A stretch of 63,899 nt of DNA, filler included, from Octopus bimaculoides (taxonomy: Eukaryota), in NCBI RefSeq assembly GCF_001194135.2. It is 5 parts of 4 records of this genome, joined end to end, with 100 filler letters (N's around TTAATTAATTAA, not from the genome) between each part and the next. Parts side by side here need not be neighbours in the genome. Positions count along the whole stretch, not along the records: positions 34,612 to 41,270 come from NC_068991.1; 4 more parts are not named here. One strand, given 5' to 3'. Position numbers and translations under genes: made by a program. The notes below the pieces were generated by a model. That model searched no databases. It saw only the letters and a list, made by a program, of their open reading frames with translations, and was not told the DNA's origin. Each line of letters opens with the position of its first letter. Positions within the stretch are counted from its first letter, which is position 1. Of this stretch, positions 3,945 to 41,270 are shown in pieces.

Positions 3945-4482
3945 TACATTCATTCAATAGACTTCAGCAGAGAAAATCTGTAGTAAAACCGCTCTGATTA
4001 CTCTACACATCGAAGATAAATTGTTTCTATAATTATTCGTAATTATCCAGAAATGCTATGTAATGCATTATTAATTATATAATTATATCATTGATGAATA
4101 AATCATGTTGTTATTGAATACAGTTATGCAAATTAGACAAACCAGTTTAACTGTATCGCAGATTGTATACACTATAAATAGCAACACCTACTCACCAAAT
4201 CACGTTGTTATTGCAAACAGTTATCCATGTTAAAAAGACCAGATTGTATACTTTGTAAATAACTATACCTCCTCATCTCTTCGTGGACAAAAGAAGATAT
4301 TATTTTCACTGAATGAAACTCCAACAAGAATAAAATTTGTCAGCTCTATATCATTTTCTTCTGGCAATAGTGAAACTAAAATTATTTCCTTATTAAAAAA
4401 AAAAAACGTTGTAACTTACGTTGCATTTCAAATAATCGCTCCAAAAATGTTATGTACATAATTAATTAATATGCGTGTGTAA

Positions 4483-4525
<43 letters not shown>

Positions 4526-4803
4526 TCCATATAGGCATACATATATGCATACATATATACATACATATATATGTGTGTGTNNNNNNNNNNNNNNNNNNNN
4601 NNNNNNNNNNNNNNNNNNNNNNNNNNNNNNNNNNNNNNNNNNNNNNNNNNNNNNNNNNNNNNNNNNNNNNNNNNNNNNNNNNNNNNNNNNNNNNNNNNNN
4701 NNNNNNNNNNNNNNNNNNNNNNNNNNNNNNNNNNNNNNNNNNATATATACACACACATATATATGTATGTATATATGTATGCATATATGTATGCCTATAT
4801 GGA

Positions 4804-4843
<40 letters not shown>

Positions 4844-5470
4844 CGCACACATGCAAATATGCATGCATATACATATATTTACATGTGTATGTGGACGTAT
4901 ATTTATACATATATATATGTGTATGTATGTATGTATGTATGTATACACACACACACATATACATATACGTACGTATATATTTACATACGCTTCTACCCAT
5001 TCGCATATTGCCTGGGGCATATACAGACTCCAATGTCCCCTCTTTTTGCCATTATTTATCTTTTATCAAACGACATACTACAGGGATATATTCTGAAAAG
5101 AAAGGTTTTTTGTTGTTTTTTTATATTTCCTTTATTCATCTAGTTATTCTTGGAGAATATTGCCGAGAGCCAGGAATTCAGACAGTGAGGCAAGCAGGCA
5201 AACAGGCAGACAGGCAGGTAAACAAAAACGAGGCATTAGGATCTGCGAGGTTGGGGGCTCCGTCGTATTCAGATGGTGGTGTCTATTAGTTAACTAATTT
5301 TACTCTGCTACATTGTCGCGATGATGATGCTGCTAGTAATGACGATGATGATGATGATGATGATGATGATNNNNNNNNNNNNNNNNNNNNNNNNNNNNNN
5401 NNNNNNNNNNNNNNNNNNNNNNNNNNNNNNNNNNNNNNNNNNNNNNNNNNNNNNNNNNNNNNNNNNNNNN

Positions 5471-34511: not shown

Positions 34512-34803
34512 NNNNNNNNNNNNNNNNNNNNNNNNNNNNNNNNNNNNNNNNNNNNTTAATTAATTAANNNNNNNNNNNNNNNNNNNNNNNNNNNNNNNNN
34601 NNNNNNNNNNNTCAACATCAGCAACAGGGTCTTGATGTATGTATGTATGTATGTATGTATGTATGTATGTATGTATGTATGCATGCATGCATGTATGTAT
34701 GTATGTATGTATGTGGGAGAATATACGAAAAAACAACAGACGAGGACAGGTGGTGTAAATAACAAAAGGATGTATTAGTATGACGCTCGGGAATACGGAA
34801 AGT

Positions 34804-34838
34804 CTTTGACGTTTCGAGCTACGCTCTTCAACAGAAAG
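34804..34838 (-). ncRNA. Minimal hammerhead-like motif, variant core CUGUUGA
   Basis: Minus strand CTTT-CTGTTGA-A-GAGC(GTA)GCTC-GAAA-CG-TC-AAAG. Related copies at 9391-9426 and 62277-62312. Confidence 0.5.
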
Positions 34839-35169
34839 AATACGGAGACAAGGAGAAAAACACGGAGAAAAAAAATTGAATAGTGTTCAGTCAACGGTCA
34901 ATCATAATAATGTATGTATGTATGTATGTATGTATGTATGTATGTATGTATGTATGTATGTATGTTTTATGTTTGTATTCTCATGCATGCAGTTACATAT
35001 GTAGACATGCTCACATATATTTAAATGATAAACTTCTGGAAAGCTTTACAGATTTTTATAGTTCCAGTGATGGACTGGATCTGTAGTCTTCGAATTAGAT
35101 TACTCCTTTCTGGTTTTGAGAAGCCTAATTTCTCAAGATTGGTATTTAAGCAGTATGTATGTATGTATG

Positions 35170-35720
35170 TATGAAGTCACTTGGAATGGTTCCAGAAGAT
35201 ATAGAAACCCTCGCTTCAGATGAAGTTGAATGGCGAACAAAAGTGTGGAATGGAATGAAAGCGTTTGAAGAGGCCAGGATAACGCAAGCAAGACTCAAAA
35301 GATATTTAAGGAAGAATGTAAAGATCGAGAAGGTGAATGACAAGGACCTTTTTGTGTGCACAATCTGTGACAGACCATGCCTGTCTTTGGCTGGCCTCAA
35401 ATCTCACCTGCGAACCCATGGAAAACAAACTTCAACCAACTATTCTGACTATATGTCTGTGCACACGTTTGAATCTGGTGTATGCCAGAAGGCTTGCAAA
35501 TCCAATGGGGGTCTTAAAAGACATGTTAAGATCCACAATGAACAGAACATACCTGCAGGTATCGGTAGTTCAAATCAGAGGTGCAATCTGTGTGGTTGTT
35601 TTTTCAGAACATTGTCTGGTTTAAAAAGCCACATCAGACACCATGAAGGGGCTAAGGTGTAGGTACAGGAGGTGGTCAAATTCTGTGTAAGGAGTAGACA
35701 ACCACCATGTATGTATGTAT
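35170..35720 (+). mobile_element. 5'-truncated RTE-type LINE 3' end: ORF2 C-terminus with three C2H2 zinc fingers
   Basis: KSLGMVPEDIETLASDEVEWRTKVWNGMKAFEEARI is the typical RTE ORF2 C-terminal pattern. It is followed by CTIC...HLRTH, (S)GVC...HVKIH and CNLC...HIRHH, stop at 35662, a short 3' UTR and a (TGTA)n tail. Flanked by (TATG)n. Confidence 0.75.
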
Positions 35721-35899
35721 ATATGTGTATGGGGGTTAAATAGTTAGCACTCTTGGCAAACATTTGATCACTATAAACATATCATCTGTGCAGATTGCTC
35801 AGAACTAAAGAAAATTCGGAACTCTAATTTAGCCTTTTACGACAGGGAAGTCTGCAATGTGTGTATGTATGTTTGTATGTTTGTATTTATATATGTATG

Positions 35900-36335
35900 T
35901 GATCTTTTGTACTCTAGGCACAAGGCCCTAAAAATTTTGGGGGAGGGGCTAGTGTCTTAGATTGACCCCAGTACGCAACTGGTACTTAATCTAACAACCA
36001 CGAAAGGATGAAAGGCGAAGTCGACCTCGGCGGAATTTGAACTCAGAACGTAGCGACAGACGAAATACCGCTAAGCATTTCGCCCGGCGTGCTAACGTTT
36101 CTTATTTCTTTATTGCCCACAAGGGGCTAAACATAGAGGGGACAAACAAGGACAGACAAAGGGATTAAGTCGATTACATCGATCCCAGTGCATAACTGGT
36201 ATTTAATTTATCAACTCCGAAAGGATGAAAGGCAAAGTCGATCTCTGCGGAATTTGAACTCAGAACGTAACGGCAGACGAAATACCGCTAAGCATTTCGC
36301 CCGGCGTCCTAACGTTTCTGCCAGCTCGCCGACTT
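35900..36335 (-). mobile_element. Two tandem SINE family A copies upstream of the GALNT gene
   Basis: Two nearly unmutated minus-strand copies (~35900-36100 and ~36100-36335). Confidence 0.85.
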
Positions 36336-36606
36336 TATGTATGTAATGTGTGTGTGTGGTATGTATGCAAGTGTGTGTGTGTGTGTGCATGTATGACCAT
36401 TTATGCATGTCATCCTATTGTACTGCGTACAATTTAAGTTCATTGACCGTGTCAAAAGTCAAATGTGTCAACAGAGAATTTATGATAATCGATATTGCCA
36501 ACTGTTACAACAGGAAACAACAGGATAGCCCCAACTAAATGAAACTAAGTTCATATATATTGAAAAATAATGCGTCGATTTTTAAACGCGCGTGATCTAA
36601 CTGATA

Positions 36607-36619
36607 TGACTCACGTGAC
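36607..36619 (+). promoter_or_regulatory. Overlapping AP-1 (TGACTCA) and E-box/CLEAR-like (TCACGTGAC) motif ~90 bp upstream of the GALNT ATG
   Basis: Sequence atgactcacgtgaca in a locally CpG-retaining, repeat-free stretch; motif match only. Confidence 0.25.
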
Positions 36620-36705
36620 ATCTAGTCACCATTAATTTTCATAAATACTCGCCTAATATTACAGCAGTGCATCACAGGGTAAAAAGTTTGCTTAATTTTT
36701 TCGCT

Positions 36706-38073
36706 ATGAAAATATCGACTTTCTTTAGATGGATTGTGACAATTTATGGTTTATTTTTAATTGCTTTTGGTTATTATTGTCTAATTAAACAAAAATGGCA
36801 ATTAGAACAAAAGCATGCAAATGACAATCGGCTTATTTTTCGGAGGATAAATATTAACACATCAAAAAAGCGAACCAGTGATTTGGATAAAACAAGATAC
36901 AAAATCGACTGGCACGATTACCAAAAAATCTTATTGGATTCCTTTAGGGAAGGACCTGGAGAACAAGGTAGACCCGTGGTGCTCAGTGCCGCAGAAAGAA
37001 TAAAAGAAGAACAGTTGTTTGCAGTGAATGGATTTAATGGTGCGGTCAGTGATAAAATATCACTATATCGTTCTTTGAGAGACATTCGCCATCCGGATTG
37101 CAAGCATAAGAAATATCTGAAGAACTTACCAAAGGTGAGTGTTATAATTCCGTTTTATAATGAACACTGGACTACATTGCTTCGCACTATATATGGAGTT
37201 TTGTGGAGGTCACCTCCAGAACTGATACAAGAGATCATTCTGGTGGATGATTTCAGCACCAAAGATCATAATAAAGAACCCTTGAGCGATTACGTGAAAG
37301 AAAACTTCAAGAAGGTCAAATTAATTCGCAACTCTAAACGGGAGGGTTTGATACGGTCCCGACTTCAAGGGGCTGAAACAGCAAAAGCTGAAGTAATAGT
37401 GTTCCTCGACTCTCATGTGGAACCATCTGTGAATTGGCTTCCTCCTTTACTAGAACCAATTGTGTTCAATGAGAAAACTGTTGTATGTCCGTTTATTGAT
37501 GTTATTGATCACACCACGTTTTCACAGATTGCTCAGGATGAAGGAGCACGTGGAGCGTTTGACTGGAATCTTAACTACAAACGTTTACCACGTCTAAAGG
37601 GAGATCAAATAGATCCCACTGAAACGTTTGAGAGCCCTGTGATGGCCGGTGGGTTGTTTGCAATGAATAAAGCATGGTTTTGGACATTAGGTGGTTATGA
37701 CCCACATCTGGATATTCGTGGAGCTGAACAGTTTGAAATTTCGTTTAAGATTTGGTTATGTGGTGGTCAAATACTTGACGCGCCTTGCTCAAGAGTTGCT
37801 CATATATATCGCGAATTTATTCCTTATTCTTCAAGTGTAAAGGCGTATGGTGATTATCTGTCACGGAATCACAAGAGAGTAGTTGAAGTCTGGATGGATG
37901 AATATAAGCAATACGCTTATAAAATGAAACCGAGTTTTAAGCGTGTGGATGCAGGAAATATTTCACAACAACTGGCTCTTCGCAAAAAGCTTCGCTGCAA
38001 ATCATTCAGGTGGTTTCTTGAGGAAGTTGCTTTTGATGTTGTTCAATATTATCCGATCGATGAAGGAAAATAG
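36706..38073 (+). CDS. GALNT10: Polypeptide N-acetylgalactosaminyltransferase, GALNT10/17-pgant6-like; single-exon ORF, 455 aa, no C-terminal ricin-B lectin domain
   Basis: Uninterrupted ORF; first ATG at 36706 (the track's 36667 start is a GTG). Type II membrane anchor (WIVTIYGLFLIAFGYYCLI), stem, then GT-A catalytic motifs SVIIPFYNE, EIILVDDFS, REGLIRSRL, FLDSHVE (DxH), GARGAFDW, SPVMAGGLFA, ISFKIWLCGG, PCSRVAHIYR, EVWMDEYK, CKSFRWF. AATAAA at 38155-38160. Subfamily assignment is from motif recall. Confidence 0.92.
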   Translation: MKISTFFRWIVTIYGLFLIAFGYYCLIKQKWQLEQKHANDNRLIFRRININTSKKRTSDLDKTRYKIDWHDYQKILLDSFREGPGEQGRPVVLSAAERIKEEQLFAVNGFNGAVSDKISLYRSLRDIRHPDCKHKKYLKNLPKVSVIIPFYNEHWTTLLRTIYGVLWRSPPELIQEIILVDDFSTKDHNKEPLSDYVKENFKKVKLIRNSKREGLIRSRLQGAETAKAEVIVFLDSHVEPSVNWLPPLLEPIVFNEKTVVCPFIDVIDHTTFSQIAQDEGARGAFDWNLNYKRLPRLKGDQIDPTETFESPVMAGGLFAMNKAWFWTLGGYDPHLDIRGAEQFEISFKIWLCGGQILDAPCSRVAHIYREFIPYSSSVKAYGDYLSRNHKRVVEVWMDEYKQYAYKMKPSFKRVDAGNISQQLALRKKLRCKSFRWFLEEVAFDVVQYYPIDEGK

Positions 38074-38969
38074 AACGATACATAGACAGGAATTTGAATC
38101 ATGATAATTTTTTCATTGAGAGGAAGTTTTTGCAAAAAGAAAGAACAAAAATTAAATAAATATTAAACCGTTTCGTTCGACTGAGAAATACATTAATTAG
38201 AAACATGAAAAATATTAATGATGAAATAAAAGTTTGAAACTTAATTAGACATGATACCAATTAGGGTCAGAAGAGATGACTATATGTTTATCAGAATGGA
38301 AAAATGTATTCTTTAACATGAGACAATTCTCAGAGAGATTTCTATTCTTGTTTATGTTTCTTTTTTATTTTATTCTTTTGTTGCTTTTGTTTCGTTTGTG
38401 ATTGCGACATCAAGAAATCTGTTCCAAAAATTACGTAACAAAGAAGAATTGCCCAACCAATGTCTGGACAGTGAACCATTCGTTTATCGTACATTCTTCA
38501 ACTCTTTCACTCTTTAGAATTGTTCAGTCGTGTGTGACGGTTAGTAGCCGAATATCTCAATAGGAAATGCTAAATTCGTCATCTTCATCATCATCATCAT
38601 CATCATCATTATCATCATTATCATCATCATATTCGTCATCGTCGTCGTTGTCGTCACCACAACTCTTTTCACGACGACCACGACCACCACGACCACCACG
38701 ACCACCACCGCTACTTGAGTCAGCACCACTATTACTACAGCCATGACATCACAACCACAACCATAACCACCAACATAATTATAAAAACACGGTTACAGAA
38801 TAGAAAACAGAATACTGGAAGACAGTTGACTCTAACCTAAATAAATAAACAAATAAAATAAAAGCTCAATATAAAATAATTTACAGAATCAAGTTTAACA
38901 GCTACGTCACACCGCATATGATTATTATAACAAGTTGAGCTAAGACTCATACACGCCAATGAAATACAT

Positions 38970-39469
38970 TTACTCTTTTACTTGTTTCAGTCATTTGACT
39001 GCGGCCATGCTGGAGTACCGCCTTTAGTCAGGCAAATCGACCTCAGGACTTATTCTTTTTGGAAGCCTAGTACTCATTCTATCGGTCTCTTTTTGCCGAA
39101 CCGCTAAGTTACGGGGATGTAAACACACCACCATCGGTTATTAAGCGATGTTGGGGGGACAAACACAGACACACAAACATACACANNNNNNNNNNNNNNN
39201 NNNNNNNNNNNNNNNNNNNNNNNNNNNNNNNNNNNNNNNNNNNNNNNNNNNNNNNNNNNNNNNNNNNNNNNNNNNNNNNNNNNNNNNNNNNNNNNNNNNN
39301 NNNNNNNNNNNNNNNNNNNNNNNNNNNNNNNNNNNNNNNNNNNNNNNNNNNNNNNNNNNNNNNNNNNNNNNNNNNACATATTTGTTTTGCAAGATTTTTG
39401 ATGTGAAATCGTGTGTTGAAACAGATGTTGTTGTACTTGGCTAAACTGGCAATATGACCATCCCCAAGT

Positions 39470-39508
<39 letters not shown>

Positions 39509-39700
39509 TACGACGGGCTTCTTTCAGTTTCCGTCTACCAAATTCACTCACAAGGCTTTGGTCGGCCCGAGGCTATAGTAGAAGGCTATAGTAGAAGTCT
39601 ATAGTAGAAGACACTTGCCCAAGGTGCCACGCAGTGGGGATGAACCCGGAACCATGTGGTTGGTAAGCTACCTACCTACCACACAGCCACTCCTGCGTTT
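38970..39700 (-). mobile_element. SINE family B copy with gap in its internal microsatellite
   Basis: Tail 38970-39185, N gap, head 39500-39700. The head contains a 13-bp triplication (gctatagtagaag). Confidence 0.8.
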
Positions 39701-40591
39701 CCAAAATATACCACCAAGACGCACATAAAAGAAGGCAACATTAGTACATTCTACTAAGACCACAACTTGATTATTTCCTTGCGTCTTGCACAAGAAAACC
39801 AATTAAATTATCTAAGAATACGAAAGTCTCAGATAAACGTTACGTGATTATACAAAAACAATTACTTCAGGTCTAAAGGAGGTTTGCACTCACCAATAAA
39901 TTCTGAACTCTCGAAGCAAACCAGATTGTCGTTCAACTAGCTAGAAATTTCTTTCTAGGCATACTCTACAATCTTATGGAAAGGAAGGAGACATTGGACA
40001 GTGTCGTATTGAGTACATATAAAACGATTGAGTAGTCAAGGTTAGATAGAGCCCTTTTGGTCATAGATCCTACGTGATCAGGGATTAACTGGAGATAGTC
40101 AACAATTCACGTCAGTGTCAAACGACCCAGAATCTGGAAACTGGGAACAATTTTAAAACCAATCAACGCGGGATCACACAAGATAATCACCTTTCAATGC
40201 AAACCTTAAACAGTCCACGAGAAATTCGATTATGCTATCACCAAATTACATCTGAACATTAGCTGGACTAGTCCAGCTCCCATTAACTCTCTATATATAT
40301 ATTTATCATTACCAACACTACTACAACCAACAAAATTGCCCCCACGTGGACTATTGACACCAGTAAGGAACAATTATGAACTCTTCATTTAATTTCATTT
40401 TTTTAAATATGTATTTTTGATAAGGTTCGTTTTTAAAAGAACCGAAATATGTTAAAAATATCTCTGACAAAATTTTAAATTAGAATTCATTTTTAATATA
40501 TTGGCGTTTTCAAACTTCTTTTTTATAAATATATACCCACTCGTATGCCACCTACACTTTTTTTATCTATCTATATATATATATATAATAT

Positions 40592-40850
40592 AAAAGTGAA
40601 GAGAGTAAAGAAATTGAGCGTTCAAACTTTATGTTTATTTCCAGCTGGAATAAAAGTCCGGCACGTGTTTCGATCGCACCAATCGCATATTGTTGCATAT
40701 TCGTATCCAGCGATTTATAAATGCATATATCTCGGCATATGAATATGTAATAATATGCGACTGGTGCGATCGAAACACATGTCGGACGTTTATTCTAATT
40801 GATAATAAACATGAAGACTGAATTTTCAAATTCTTCATTCTCCTCATTTT
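40592..40850. repeat. Long inverted repeat (~115-bp arms, ~30-nt spacer)
   Basis: AATAAAAGTCCGGCACGTGTTTCGATCGCACCAATCGCATATT pairs with AATATGCGACTGGTGCGATCGAAACACATGTCGGACGTTTATT, with weaker outer extensions. Confidence 0.85.
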
Positions 40851-41187
40851 GATATTGTCTTTTTTAGACTCTAAGTAGCCAAGAAATAAATTGGTACATC
40901 GGATGAGAGCTGACGGTAGATTACCAAAAAAACGCACCATGGGAAGGTACACAAATATTGCTCTGAACTGAGTGGGAACGCTTAACACTCTTGTTCAAGA
41001 ATATAAGGACGCAGATAGTGTGTCGTATAGGCAGCTGTAGACGGTGTTATCTGGGGCTAAATAACAGTAGCAATCGTCCTAACCAGGACAGCCACATCAT
41101 GTTGGCAAATAATCTTTACTCGAGAGTACTGTTACTGAATGCCTCTCGTTCAGAGATTTAGAGATAATAATTTTATATATGTATGTG

Positions 41188-41270
<83 letters not shown>

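Follow-up and report, generated by a model that had tools for sequence, protein, structure and literature searches.

The analysed window is a stretch of 63,899 nucleotides from Octopus bimaculoides (assembly GCF_001194135.2) made up of 5 joined parts of 4 records, and the part studied here, at positions 34612 to 41270, was taken from record NC_068991.1; the window coordinate equals the L001 coordinate plus 26705. The sole long open reading frame (ORF) on the plus strand of this part, at positions 36706 to 38073, runs uninterrupted from an ATG at 36706 to a TAG at 38071 to 38073 and encodes a protein of 455 amino acids that ends with ...VAFDVVQYYPIDEGK-TAG, also written ...KSFRWFLEEVAFDVVQYYPIDEGK. 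By homology, the ORF belongs to the GT27 family of polypeptide N-acetylgalactosaminyltransferases (ppGalNAc-Ts), and its nearest sequence relatives assign it to the glycopeptide-preferring GalNAc-T10/T7-type subfamily. Two hallmarks of the GT27 family are missing from the octopus protein, namely the lectin domain and the Trp of the WGGE motif. We think it probable that this is a genuine gene, kept by selection in Octopus and derived from an old intronless paralogue of GALNT10, here called B, and that it encodes a lectin-less protein with impaired or re-tuned catalysis. The features of the gene are listed below, with the evidence in brackets.

36706..38073, plus strand: complete intronless coding sequence (CDS) for a lectin-less GalNAc-T10-like protein of 455 amino acids plus TAG (Pfam, match to the solved structure 2d7i, orthologues).
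36730..36786, plus strand: type II signal-anchor or transmembrane segment, residues 9 to 27, WIVTIYGLFLIAFGYYCLI (hydrophobicity read from the sequence; helix at residues 3 to 44 in the AlphaFold2 model).
36817..36891, plus strand: short disordered stem, residues 38 to 62 (predicted local distance difference test, pLDDT, below 50).
36901..38055, plus strand: GT-A catalytic domain of the GT27 ppGalNAc-T type, residues 66 to 450 (Pfam, 2d7i, AlphaFold2, Foldseek).
37156..37158, plus strand: Tyr151, which replaces the invariant His of the FHNE motif, His145 in GalNAc-T2 (T2) and His125 in GalNAc-T1 (T1), a contact to uridine diphosphate (UDP) (alignment with 115 canonical sequences and the decapod B proteins).
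37408..37416, plus strand: DSH motif (D235-x-H237) for Mn2+ binding, kept (alignment; PMC4388629 Table 2, D224/H226).
37702..37728, plus strand: Gal/GalNAc-T motif with a remodelled Trp loop, PHLDIRGAE versus PGLDIWGGE (alignment; W338R codon at 37717-37719).
37801..37812, plus strand: H366 (third Mn2+ ligand, T2 H359) and R369 (T2 R362), both kept (alignment; PMC4388629 Table 2).
38056..38073, plus strand: five-residue tail IDEGK and TAG, with no detectable homology, in place of the linker and lectin domain (tblastn, lectin profile).
38074..38972, plus strand: conserved 3' flank, putative 3' untranslated region (UTR), with AATAAA at 38155-38160 (three-species comparison).

The exact protein corresponds to a called gene on the O. 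bimaculoides chromosome record CM046611.1 (GCA_001194135.2), and its database cluster at 90% contains 2 further proteins of 455 amino acids each, one from O. vulgaris (CAI9729828.1, annotated as "hypothetical") and one from O. sinensis (XP_029654206.1, annotated as "polypeptide N-acetylgalactosaminyltransferase 10-like"). The CDS was 1368 nt long and the TAG stop was at the identical position in the assemblies of all 3 species. The gene has thus already been publicly annotated as GALNT10-like. Our literature search found no paper that discusses it, and nothing on octopus retrogenes of the ppGalNAc-T family; new is its reading as an ancient cephalopod retrogene with a secondary loss of the lectin domain, a replacement of the gatekeeper residue and demonstrable constraint.

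The Pfam search identified Glycos_transf_2 (PF00535, 3e-32) and no match to Ricin_B_lectin (PF00652), as the initial annotation had anticipated. The best solved relative was human GalNAc-T10 (2d7i), with an E-value of 5e-147 and about 55% identity, and the alignment covered residues 54 to 451 of the query, halting at the linker that joins the catalytic domain to the lectin domain in the 570-residue chain. The named top relatives were all GALNT10 or N-acetylgalactosaminyltransferase 6-like proteins. An AlphaFold2 model based on a 45-sequence alignment (mean pLDDT 87.8, predicted template modelling score 0.82) consisted of an N-terminal helix at residues 3 to 44, with the hydrophobic residues 9 to 27 inside it, a disordered stem at residues 38 to 62, and a complete GT-A domain in which the sole low-confidence internal segment was a flexible loop at residues ~370 to 380. 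The top Foldseek match was again GalNAc-T10 (2d7i_A), with a root-mean-square deviation of 1.5 Å over 389 columns and a template modelling score of 0.82.

The ORF, the Pfam and 2d7i matches and the model all agree with the claim in the initial annotation of a transmembrane segment, a stem and a complete GT-A domain. The hydrophobic segment, the N-terminal helix and the disordered stem, read from the sequence and from the model, correspond to a type II topology, and the product should be a type II membrane protein of the Golgi or endoplasmic reticulum (ER) with an intact GT-A fold.

Outside Octopus, the closest relatives, with 59% to 63% identity, were a Sepia pharaonis protein of 650 amino acids (CAE1241128.1), the cluster of which also contains Logan members, and a protein of 653 amino acids from a contig of ENA ERZ21867824. 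These 2 proteins represent the intronless GALNT10-like paralogue B, and we refer to them as decapod B. Their CDSs were uninterrupted over 1953 nt (S. pharaonis) and 1962 nt (ENA contig), and both carried a full Ricin_B domain (87 to 94 bits). In the decapod B paralogues, the stem is acidic and about 120 amino acids long, far longer than that of the octopus protein. The canonical GALNT10 of O. bimaculoides (P0008, 604 amino acids, lectin-bearing) was located on a different chromosome record, where it spans about 298 kb. A gene with such a span must be multi-exon.

To describe the changes in the catalytic domain, we used 162 columns that were at least 97% invariant among 115 canonical GALNT10-like sequences. 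A total of 17 of these columns were altered in all 3 octopus proteins, as compared to 9 in decapod B. The octopus-specific changes were H151Y, Y274Q, R275I/F, G334H, W338R, G340A, Y343F, L345I, M356I and F374Y, 4 of which fall within the otherwise invariant nine-residue loop that has been changed from PGLDIWGGE to PHLDIRGAE. By register, R338 corresponds to Trp331 of GalNAc-T2, since the spacing is 28 residues both between W331 and H359 in GalNAc-T2 and between R338 and H366 in the octopus proteins. Among the 197 fetched homologues of at least 400 amino acids in which the motif could be located, Trp was present in 194, and Arg solely in the 3 octopus proteins. The WGGE motif with its gatekeeper Trp is thus RGAE in octopus, with E341 (T2 E334) kept, and the score for the Gal/GalNAc-T motif (PF02709) was only 22.1 to 22.6 bits for the octopus proteins, with a cutoff of 23, versus 34 to 35.5 bits for decapod B and the canonical octopus enzyme. 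Position 151 is a His in 100% of the 115 canonical sequences and also in decapod B, and a Tyr in octopus.

The remaining residues of the active site were kept. These include R219, D235, H237, A314-G316, E341, H366 and R369, which are all the others in the list of PMC4388629, as well as F285 and W287 in the peptide groove and the conserved cysteines. D235-S-H237 and H366 align with D224/H226/H359 of GalNAc-T2, the Mn2+ ligands, and A314-G316, E341 and R219 make up the GalNAc pocket. G340A was dropped as a diagnostic change because WGAE is found in other family members. It was also noted that the GALNT10-like Anopheles proteins P0149 to P0155 have WGAE instead of WGGE and are nearly double in length (~950 to 1090 amino acids); these could be either gene models fused in tandem or proteins with a genuine double domain.

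Trp331 is regarded as a "key catalytic" residue, a gatekeeper to which the flexible loop is coupled (PMC4432651, PMC6994419). It touches C6 of GalNAc through a CH-pi interaction and hydrogen-bonds with the leaving phosphate, most strongly close to the transition state, and it is listed among the residues that are experimentally crucial for reactivity (PMC4388629). Furthermore, His145 of GalNAc-T2 and His125 of GalNAc-T1 contact the uridine or UDP (PMC6994419, PMC3960557). Because the Trp loop has been rebuilt, a strongly reduced or re-specified transfer is rated first: by analogy with GALNTL5, the octopus protein would be a weakly active or non-catalytic "pseudo-GalNAc-T", to which we give an even chance or slightly better.

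Ranked second is a fully competent, still-active enzyme of the T10 type that consists of the catalytic domain only, in which Arg338 would stand in for the Trp by binding the leaving phosphate, and which would perform short-range "follow-up" glycosylation beside GalNAc that is already in place, having lost lectin-guided long-range activity only. The alignment is consistent with such an enzyme, in that none of DxH, H366, E341, R219, R369, A314-G316, F285/W287 or the conserved cysteines has been lost, the ORF is under purifying selection, as described below, and a lectin-deleted snail enzyme is active (PMC6994419). G340A should also be tolerated, as WGAE exists in other family members. However, the gatekeeper Trp, crucial for reactivity (PMC4388629), is present in 194 of the 194 other homologues, the UDP-contacting His has also been replaced, 4 changes are clustered in a nine-residue invariant loop, and the evolution of the protein has accelerated relative to decapod B. 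A competent enzyme is therefore possible, yet clearly the less probable of the 2, and the alternatives that remain take up, even when added together, a small share.

To study the selective constraints on the gene, we compared the CDSs from the 3 Octopus species. The O. bimaculoides and O. vulgaris CDSs differed by 63 substitutions and 0 indels in 1368 nt, as compared to 9 to 11 gap events per 750 to 890 nt of aligned flank. The ratio of nonsynonymous to synonymous substitution rates (dN/dS) was 0.30 to 0.41 for O. bimaculoides versus O. vulgaris or O. sinensis, and 0.09 to 0.12 for O. vulgaris versus O. sinensis. Counting single hits between O. bimaculoides and O. vulgaris, there were 31 nonsynonymous changes at 1077 sites and 28 synonymous changes at 288 sites (binomial P = 6e-6), and the frame stayed open in only 3% of the simulations with 63 random substitutions. 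The octopus ORF is under purifying selection, though loosely constrained. In Tajima relative-rate tests, the octopus proteins had 44 to 56 unique changes versus 22 to 34 in decapod B, with P<0.05 in 8 of the 10 comparisons (P from 1e-4 to 0.17), and decapod B in turn had 65 unique changes versus 15 in the canonical gene (P = 2e-8).

These data bear on the suggestion that the ORF is a non-functional relic, that is, an unexpressed or recently dead retrocopy in which the frame is open by chance. The gene is intronless, located amid microsatellites and repeats, and has a higher dN/dS ratio than typical housekeeping genes, as might be expected of a relic. However, the deficit of nonsynonymous changes, the complete lack of indels as compared to about 10 in each flank, and the 3% of neutral simulations that kept the ORF make this very unlikely, and so do the conserved stop codon and 3' flank and a frame that has been open since the split from the decapods, with about 60% identity remaining.

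A neighbour-joining tree inferred from Kimura distances over 383 catalytic-domain columns, with 500 bootstraps, placed the octopus proteins of 455 amino acids together with decapod B in 1 clade with 99% bootstrap support, and the canonical cephalopod GALNT10 proteins in a separate clade with 100% support. The octopus and decapod B proteins had identical derived states at S164G, F384Y and Y389H, all in the near-invariant columns described above, and the motifs NHKRV, DAGNI and CKSF.WF.EE.AFD.V..YP in common. The octopus CDS is intronless and the parental-type gene is multi-exon and located elsewhere, as is characteristic of a retrogene. Only short A-rich runs and no poly(A) tract were observed past the stop codon, and no direct repeats that would mark target-site duplications bracket the gene; an event older than the octopus-decapod split would be expected to have lost such hallmarks. 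The lineages of octopus and cuttlefish separated more than 200 million years ago. The simplest reading of the sequence data would be a single old retroposition of a GALNT10-type mRNA that predates this split, followed by loss of the lectin domain in octopus.

A comparison of the flanks of the octopus and decapod loci with tblastx for synteny yielded microsatellite noise only, and the 2 decapod loci were collinear with each other. The similarity between the latter (~74% nucleotide identity) covered 4452-5000 in the S. pharaonis or ENA locus L004 and 4497-5000 in the other (L005), so that it reaches some 550 nt beyond the start codon in the upstream direction, with a second upstream block at 3351-4003 in L004 and 3705-4351 in L005. 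These blocks may represent a 5' UTR or promoter that has been conserved in the retrogene.

Alternatively, the octopus gene could be an independent, octopus-specific retrocopy of a truncated or prematurely polyadenylated GALNT10 mRNA, and not an orthologue of decapod B. The identity to the canonical octopus GALNT10 (56% to 62%) is similar to that to decapod B (59% to 62%), synteny with the decapod loci is undetectable, both lineages have long branches, and the arthropod entries P0105 and P0107, which end just past the catalytic domain, suggest that truncated forms arise readily. We nevertheless regard this origin as highly improbable, because of the 99% bootstrap support, the shared derived states and common motifs, and because the octopus tail does not start at the "...GE" end point of the arthropod entries.

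The homology to every relative stopped at position 38055, at "...YYP", the equivalent of which is "HYP" in Sepia. After "HYP", the Sepia protein continues with PVIPKSSAHGEIRN... into the lectin domain, and the octopus protein with IDEGK and the stop codon. We searched for remnants of a lectin domain in 10 kb on each side of the gene in O. bimaculoides and O. vulgaris (21 kb), and, for O. sinensis, in 10 kb of upstream and 4.3 kb of downstream sequence (15.7 kb). No match was obtained in these loci with tblastn for 3 lectin-bearing relatives (E<=10), and a hidden Markov model of 116 lectin domains yielded a best E-value of 4.9 in the six-frame translations, as compared to 2e-60 for the Sepia positive control. 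No lectin-bearing octopus protein of the B type was found among the best relatives of the Sepia B protein. Since the intronless decapod relatives retain the lectin domain, we infer that it was secondarily lost in the octopus lineage.

The last 29 nt of the CDS contained no GT dinucleotide, and the closest sequence that reasonably resembles a donor, CAG|GTGGTT at 38010, would if used delete the conserved end of the catalytic domain. In 3 independent assemblies, the stop was the same TAG and was followed by the same 3' flank, and an assembly error is therefore excluded. The tail was IDEGK or IDEEK in the 3 species, which also share the stop codon, the adjoining 300 nt of 3' flank and, 82 nt past the stop, the AATAAA. 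The identity between O. bimaculoides and O. vulgaris was ~94% in the 3' flank and ~88% upstream, and the conservation of 38074 to 38972 fits a 3' UTR with a putative poly(A) signal. The initial annotation had described an ORF end with no obvious GT donor, no lectin-like remnant in the next few hundred bases and a stop that might still prove to be an assembly error, and had proposed a lineage-specific, truncated paralogue of the GalNAc-T10 type; the first 2 observations were reproduced, the second over a far longer distance, and the paralogue is supported.

That the lectin domain is encoded elsewhere, by an exon more than 10 kb downstream that is spliced on, or that the stop is artefactual and stems from assembly or annotation, is hardly credible: the part of the window contains only 3.2 kb downstream, including a 190-nt gap at 39186-39375, and cephalopod introns can be very long, but the TAG and 3' flank recur in the 3 assemblies, no lectin-like coding potential was detected in either O. 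bimaculoides or O. vulgaris up to 10 kb downstream, the final 29 nt offer no GT, the lectin domain is contiguous in the decapod orthologues so that an intron would need to have been created de novo, all 3 public gene models stop at 455 amino acids, and the AATAAA 82 nt past the stop is conserved.

It was also noted that 2 arthropod entries, P0105 (455 amino acids, 66 member sequences) and P0107 (423 amino acids, Ranatra chinensis), end with unrelated tails a few residues past "...YPPVEP..GE". They were set aside as candidates for further natural lectin-less cases, as their appearance is that of partial gene models or of isoforms with intron read-through, and not of genuine genes without the lectin domain.

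We propose that a GALNT10-type mRNA was retroposed to give rise to the intronless B gene common to octopus and cuttlefish, and that the cuttlefish gene kept the catalytic and lectin domains in a single exon. In the octopus lineage, the CDS would have been cut about 5 codons past the catalytic domain, so that linker and ricin-B lectin domain were removed, the stem would have become shorter, the gatekeeper-Trp loop rebuilt from PGLDIWGGE to PHLDIRGAE, and the uridine-contacting His replaced by Tyr. The resulting protein may still bind Mn2+, the UDP-sugar and a (glyco)peptide via the catalytic domain, to which any glycopeptide recognition would be left, and it should not perform lectin-guided long-range glycosylation. 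With the Trp lost, and with it the stacking on GalNAc C6 and the hydrogen bond to the phosphate, GalNAc transfer would be strongly reduced or re-specified; Arg338 could bind the phosphate, which might allow for residual or altered donor use.

Several observations weigh against this proposal. Every metal and sugar ligand is retained, which favours a residual constraint on catalysis or ligand binding. The effect of the Trp to Arg change is extrapolated from other isoforms, and the Arg could still engage the phosphate through hydrogen bonding. The lectin domain of GalNAc-T10 is dispensable for catalysis (PMC8472655), and a snail ppGalNAc-T without the lectin domain is fully active on peptides (PMC6994419). 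The dN/dS ratio of 0.3 to 0.4 is relaxed, and the protein differs between species at 31 to 33 of the 455 residues, as compared to 10 of the 604 in the canonical paralogue, which is about 4 times faster. The sample consists of 3 closely related Octopus species. The tree is distance-based, and with both B lineages on long branches it may be affected by long-branch attraction. Finally, no transcript-derived copy was found in the database for any octopus, which is uninformative because the canonical octopus paralogue also has none.

Several parts of the initial annotation are modified by these results. The lectin-less architecture of a T10-type protein stands, but in T10-type enzymes the preference for GalNAc at the +1 position, or for glycopeptides, sits in the catalytic domain (PMC3173194). 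Because of this, and because the lectin domain is dispensable, loss of the lectin domain alone does not predict inactivity. The account of a truncated paralogue is correct with regard to the truncation; it overlooked the intronless locus, the lectin-bearing intronless relatives and the replacement of the gatekeeper Trp and of the His. The suggestion of an altered specificity or a non-catalytic role is plausible in view of the Trp to Arg and uridine-contacting His to Tyr changes and the purifying selection, whereas a "dominant-negative" role is pure conjecture. C. elegans GLY-8 had been cited as another lectin-less member; our literature search returned nothing on a lack of the lectin domain in that protein.

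A bolder interpretation of the sequence changes, which we consider rather improbable, is that the octopus lineage turned the old retrogene into a new kind of GT27 protein, without the lectin domain, with a cationic Arg in the place of the Trp that stacks on GalNAc C6, and with Tyr for the uridine-contacting His. It would either use a UDP-sugar or acceptor chemistry that differs from that of every known ppGalNAc-T, or act as a non-catalytic regulator of mucin-type O-glycosylation that binds glycopeptides or UDP-sugars. If true, such a regulator would have evolved independently, by convergence, as a counterpart of mammalian GALNTL5, and might be expressed in the germline like many retrogenes. 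The gene is a clean example of an ancient cephalopod retrogene with a later domain loss, which is of moderate specialist interest and does not represent a new system. An independent, selectively maintained, lectin-less octopus paralogue provides a natural comparison for GALNTL5 and bears on whether "pseudo-GalNAc-Ts" recur in evolution, and the changed gatekeeper Trp together with the lectin-bearing cuttlefish sisters allow tests of the contributions of the lectin domain and the Trp loop.

The gene is surrounded by repeats. Microsatellites of the types (ATGT)n, (TA)n and (TG)n were densely packed on its flanks, at 34635-34978, 35857-35900 and 41174-41270, and yielded spurious ORFs with translations such as YIHTYIHT and MYVCMYVC. 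An ORF for 167 amino acids with 3 C2H2 zinc fingers (35159-35662, plus strand) starts within an (ATGT)n array about 1 kb upstream of the gene. Its DNA was found in the O. bimaculoides locus but in neither of the loci fetched for O. vulgaris and O. sinensis, and it thus looks like a lineage-specific insertion; our guess is that it is a transposable-element fragment. Two copies of a 146-nt direct repeat (35957-36102 and 36174-36319; 88% identity, 217 nt apart) were located 400 to 750 nt upstream of the start codon. Further copies were present in the other 2 species at the orthologous site and, in inverted orientation, about 11 kb downstream in O. vulgaris; this is probably an interspersed repeat.

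Downstream of the gene, (TCA)n and (CACGACCAC)n low-complexity arrays at 38579-38708, about 500 nt past the stop, yielded a spurious poly-Met/poly-Val ORF on the minus strand. A 217-nt interspersed repeat that resembles a short interspersed nuclear element (38969-39185) adjoins the 190-nt assembly gap, a run of N at 39186-39375, and several copies with 79% to 92% identity were found in both orientations at all 3 Octopus loci. Rfam and tRNA scans of the part at 34612 to 41270, this repeat included, yielded no match. An inverted repeat at 40587-40856, with 132-nt arms that were 79% complementary and a 6-nt loop, was found at the orthologous position in the 3 species with an arm identity of ~94% between species, and could be an element similar to miniature inverted-repeat transposable elements or a long hairpin.

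In architecture, the octopus protein resembles human and mouse GALNTL5 (GALNT20), which also combines a type II anchor and a stem with a GT-A unit that carries the GT1 and Gal/GalNAc-T motifs, lacks the ricin-B domain, and is likewise atypical yet kept as a functional gene. GALNTL5 is the only lectin-less one of the 20 human isoforms (PMC8472655), and it is testis-restricted, has no transferase activity in vitro and interacts with ER chaperones (PMC11655647, PMC8472655). By analogy, a GALNTL5-like non-catalytic mode based on protein interactions seems the most likely for the octopus protein. However, the 2 genes are not orthologous: the octopus gene is intronless and nests in a cephalopod-specific intronless clade within the protostome GALNT10-like sequences, so that the lectin domain was lost independently and the likeness is confined to the architecture.

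In sequence and structure, the best match across the whole catalytic domain is to human GalNAc-T10 (2d7i) and the protostome GALNT10 or pgant6-like proteins, with which the octopus protein has in common DxH, the third His, the Glu of WGGE, and both the pocket for GalNAc and the groove for the peptide. It differs from the GalNAc-T10 type by the lack of the linker and lectin domain, by the Trp to Arg and FHNE His to Tyr replacements, by further changes at G334, G340, Y274 and Y343, and by a Gal/GalNAc-T motif that scores below the curated Pfam cutoff, and the gene has a single coding exon as compared to the multi-exon canonical octopus GALNT10 of ~298 kb. The decapod B genes form the sister clade, with a single-exon CDS, shared derived residues and fast evolution relative to the canonical paralogue, but they keep the WGGE Trp, the FHNE His, the full Ricin_B domain and the long acidic stem, all 4 of which have been lost or changed in octopus. 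Finally, the engineered delta-ppGalNAcT of Biomphalaria glabrata, like the octopus protein, consists of the catalytic domain only, and has a fold that is stable without the lectin domain (PMC6994419). The engineered lectin-deleted ppGalNAc-Ts keep the native active site and activity, whereas the active-site loop of the octopus protein has been altered naturally.

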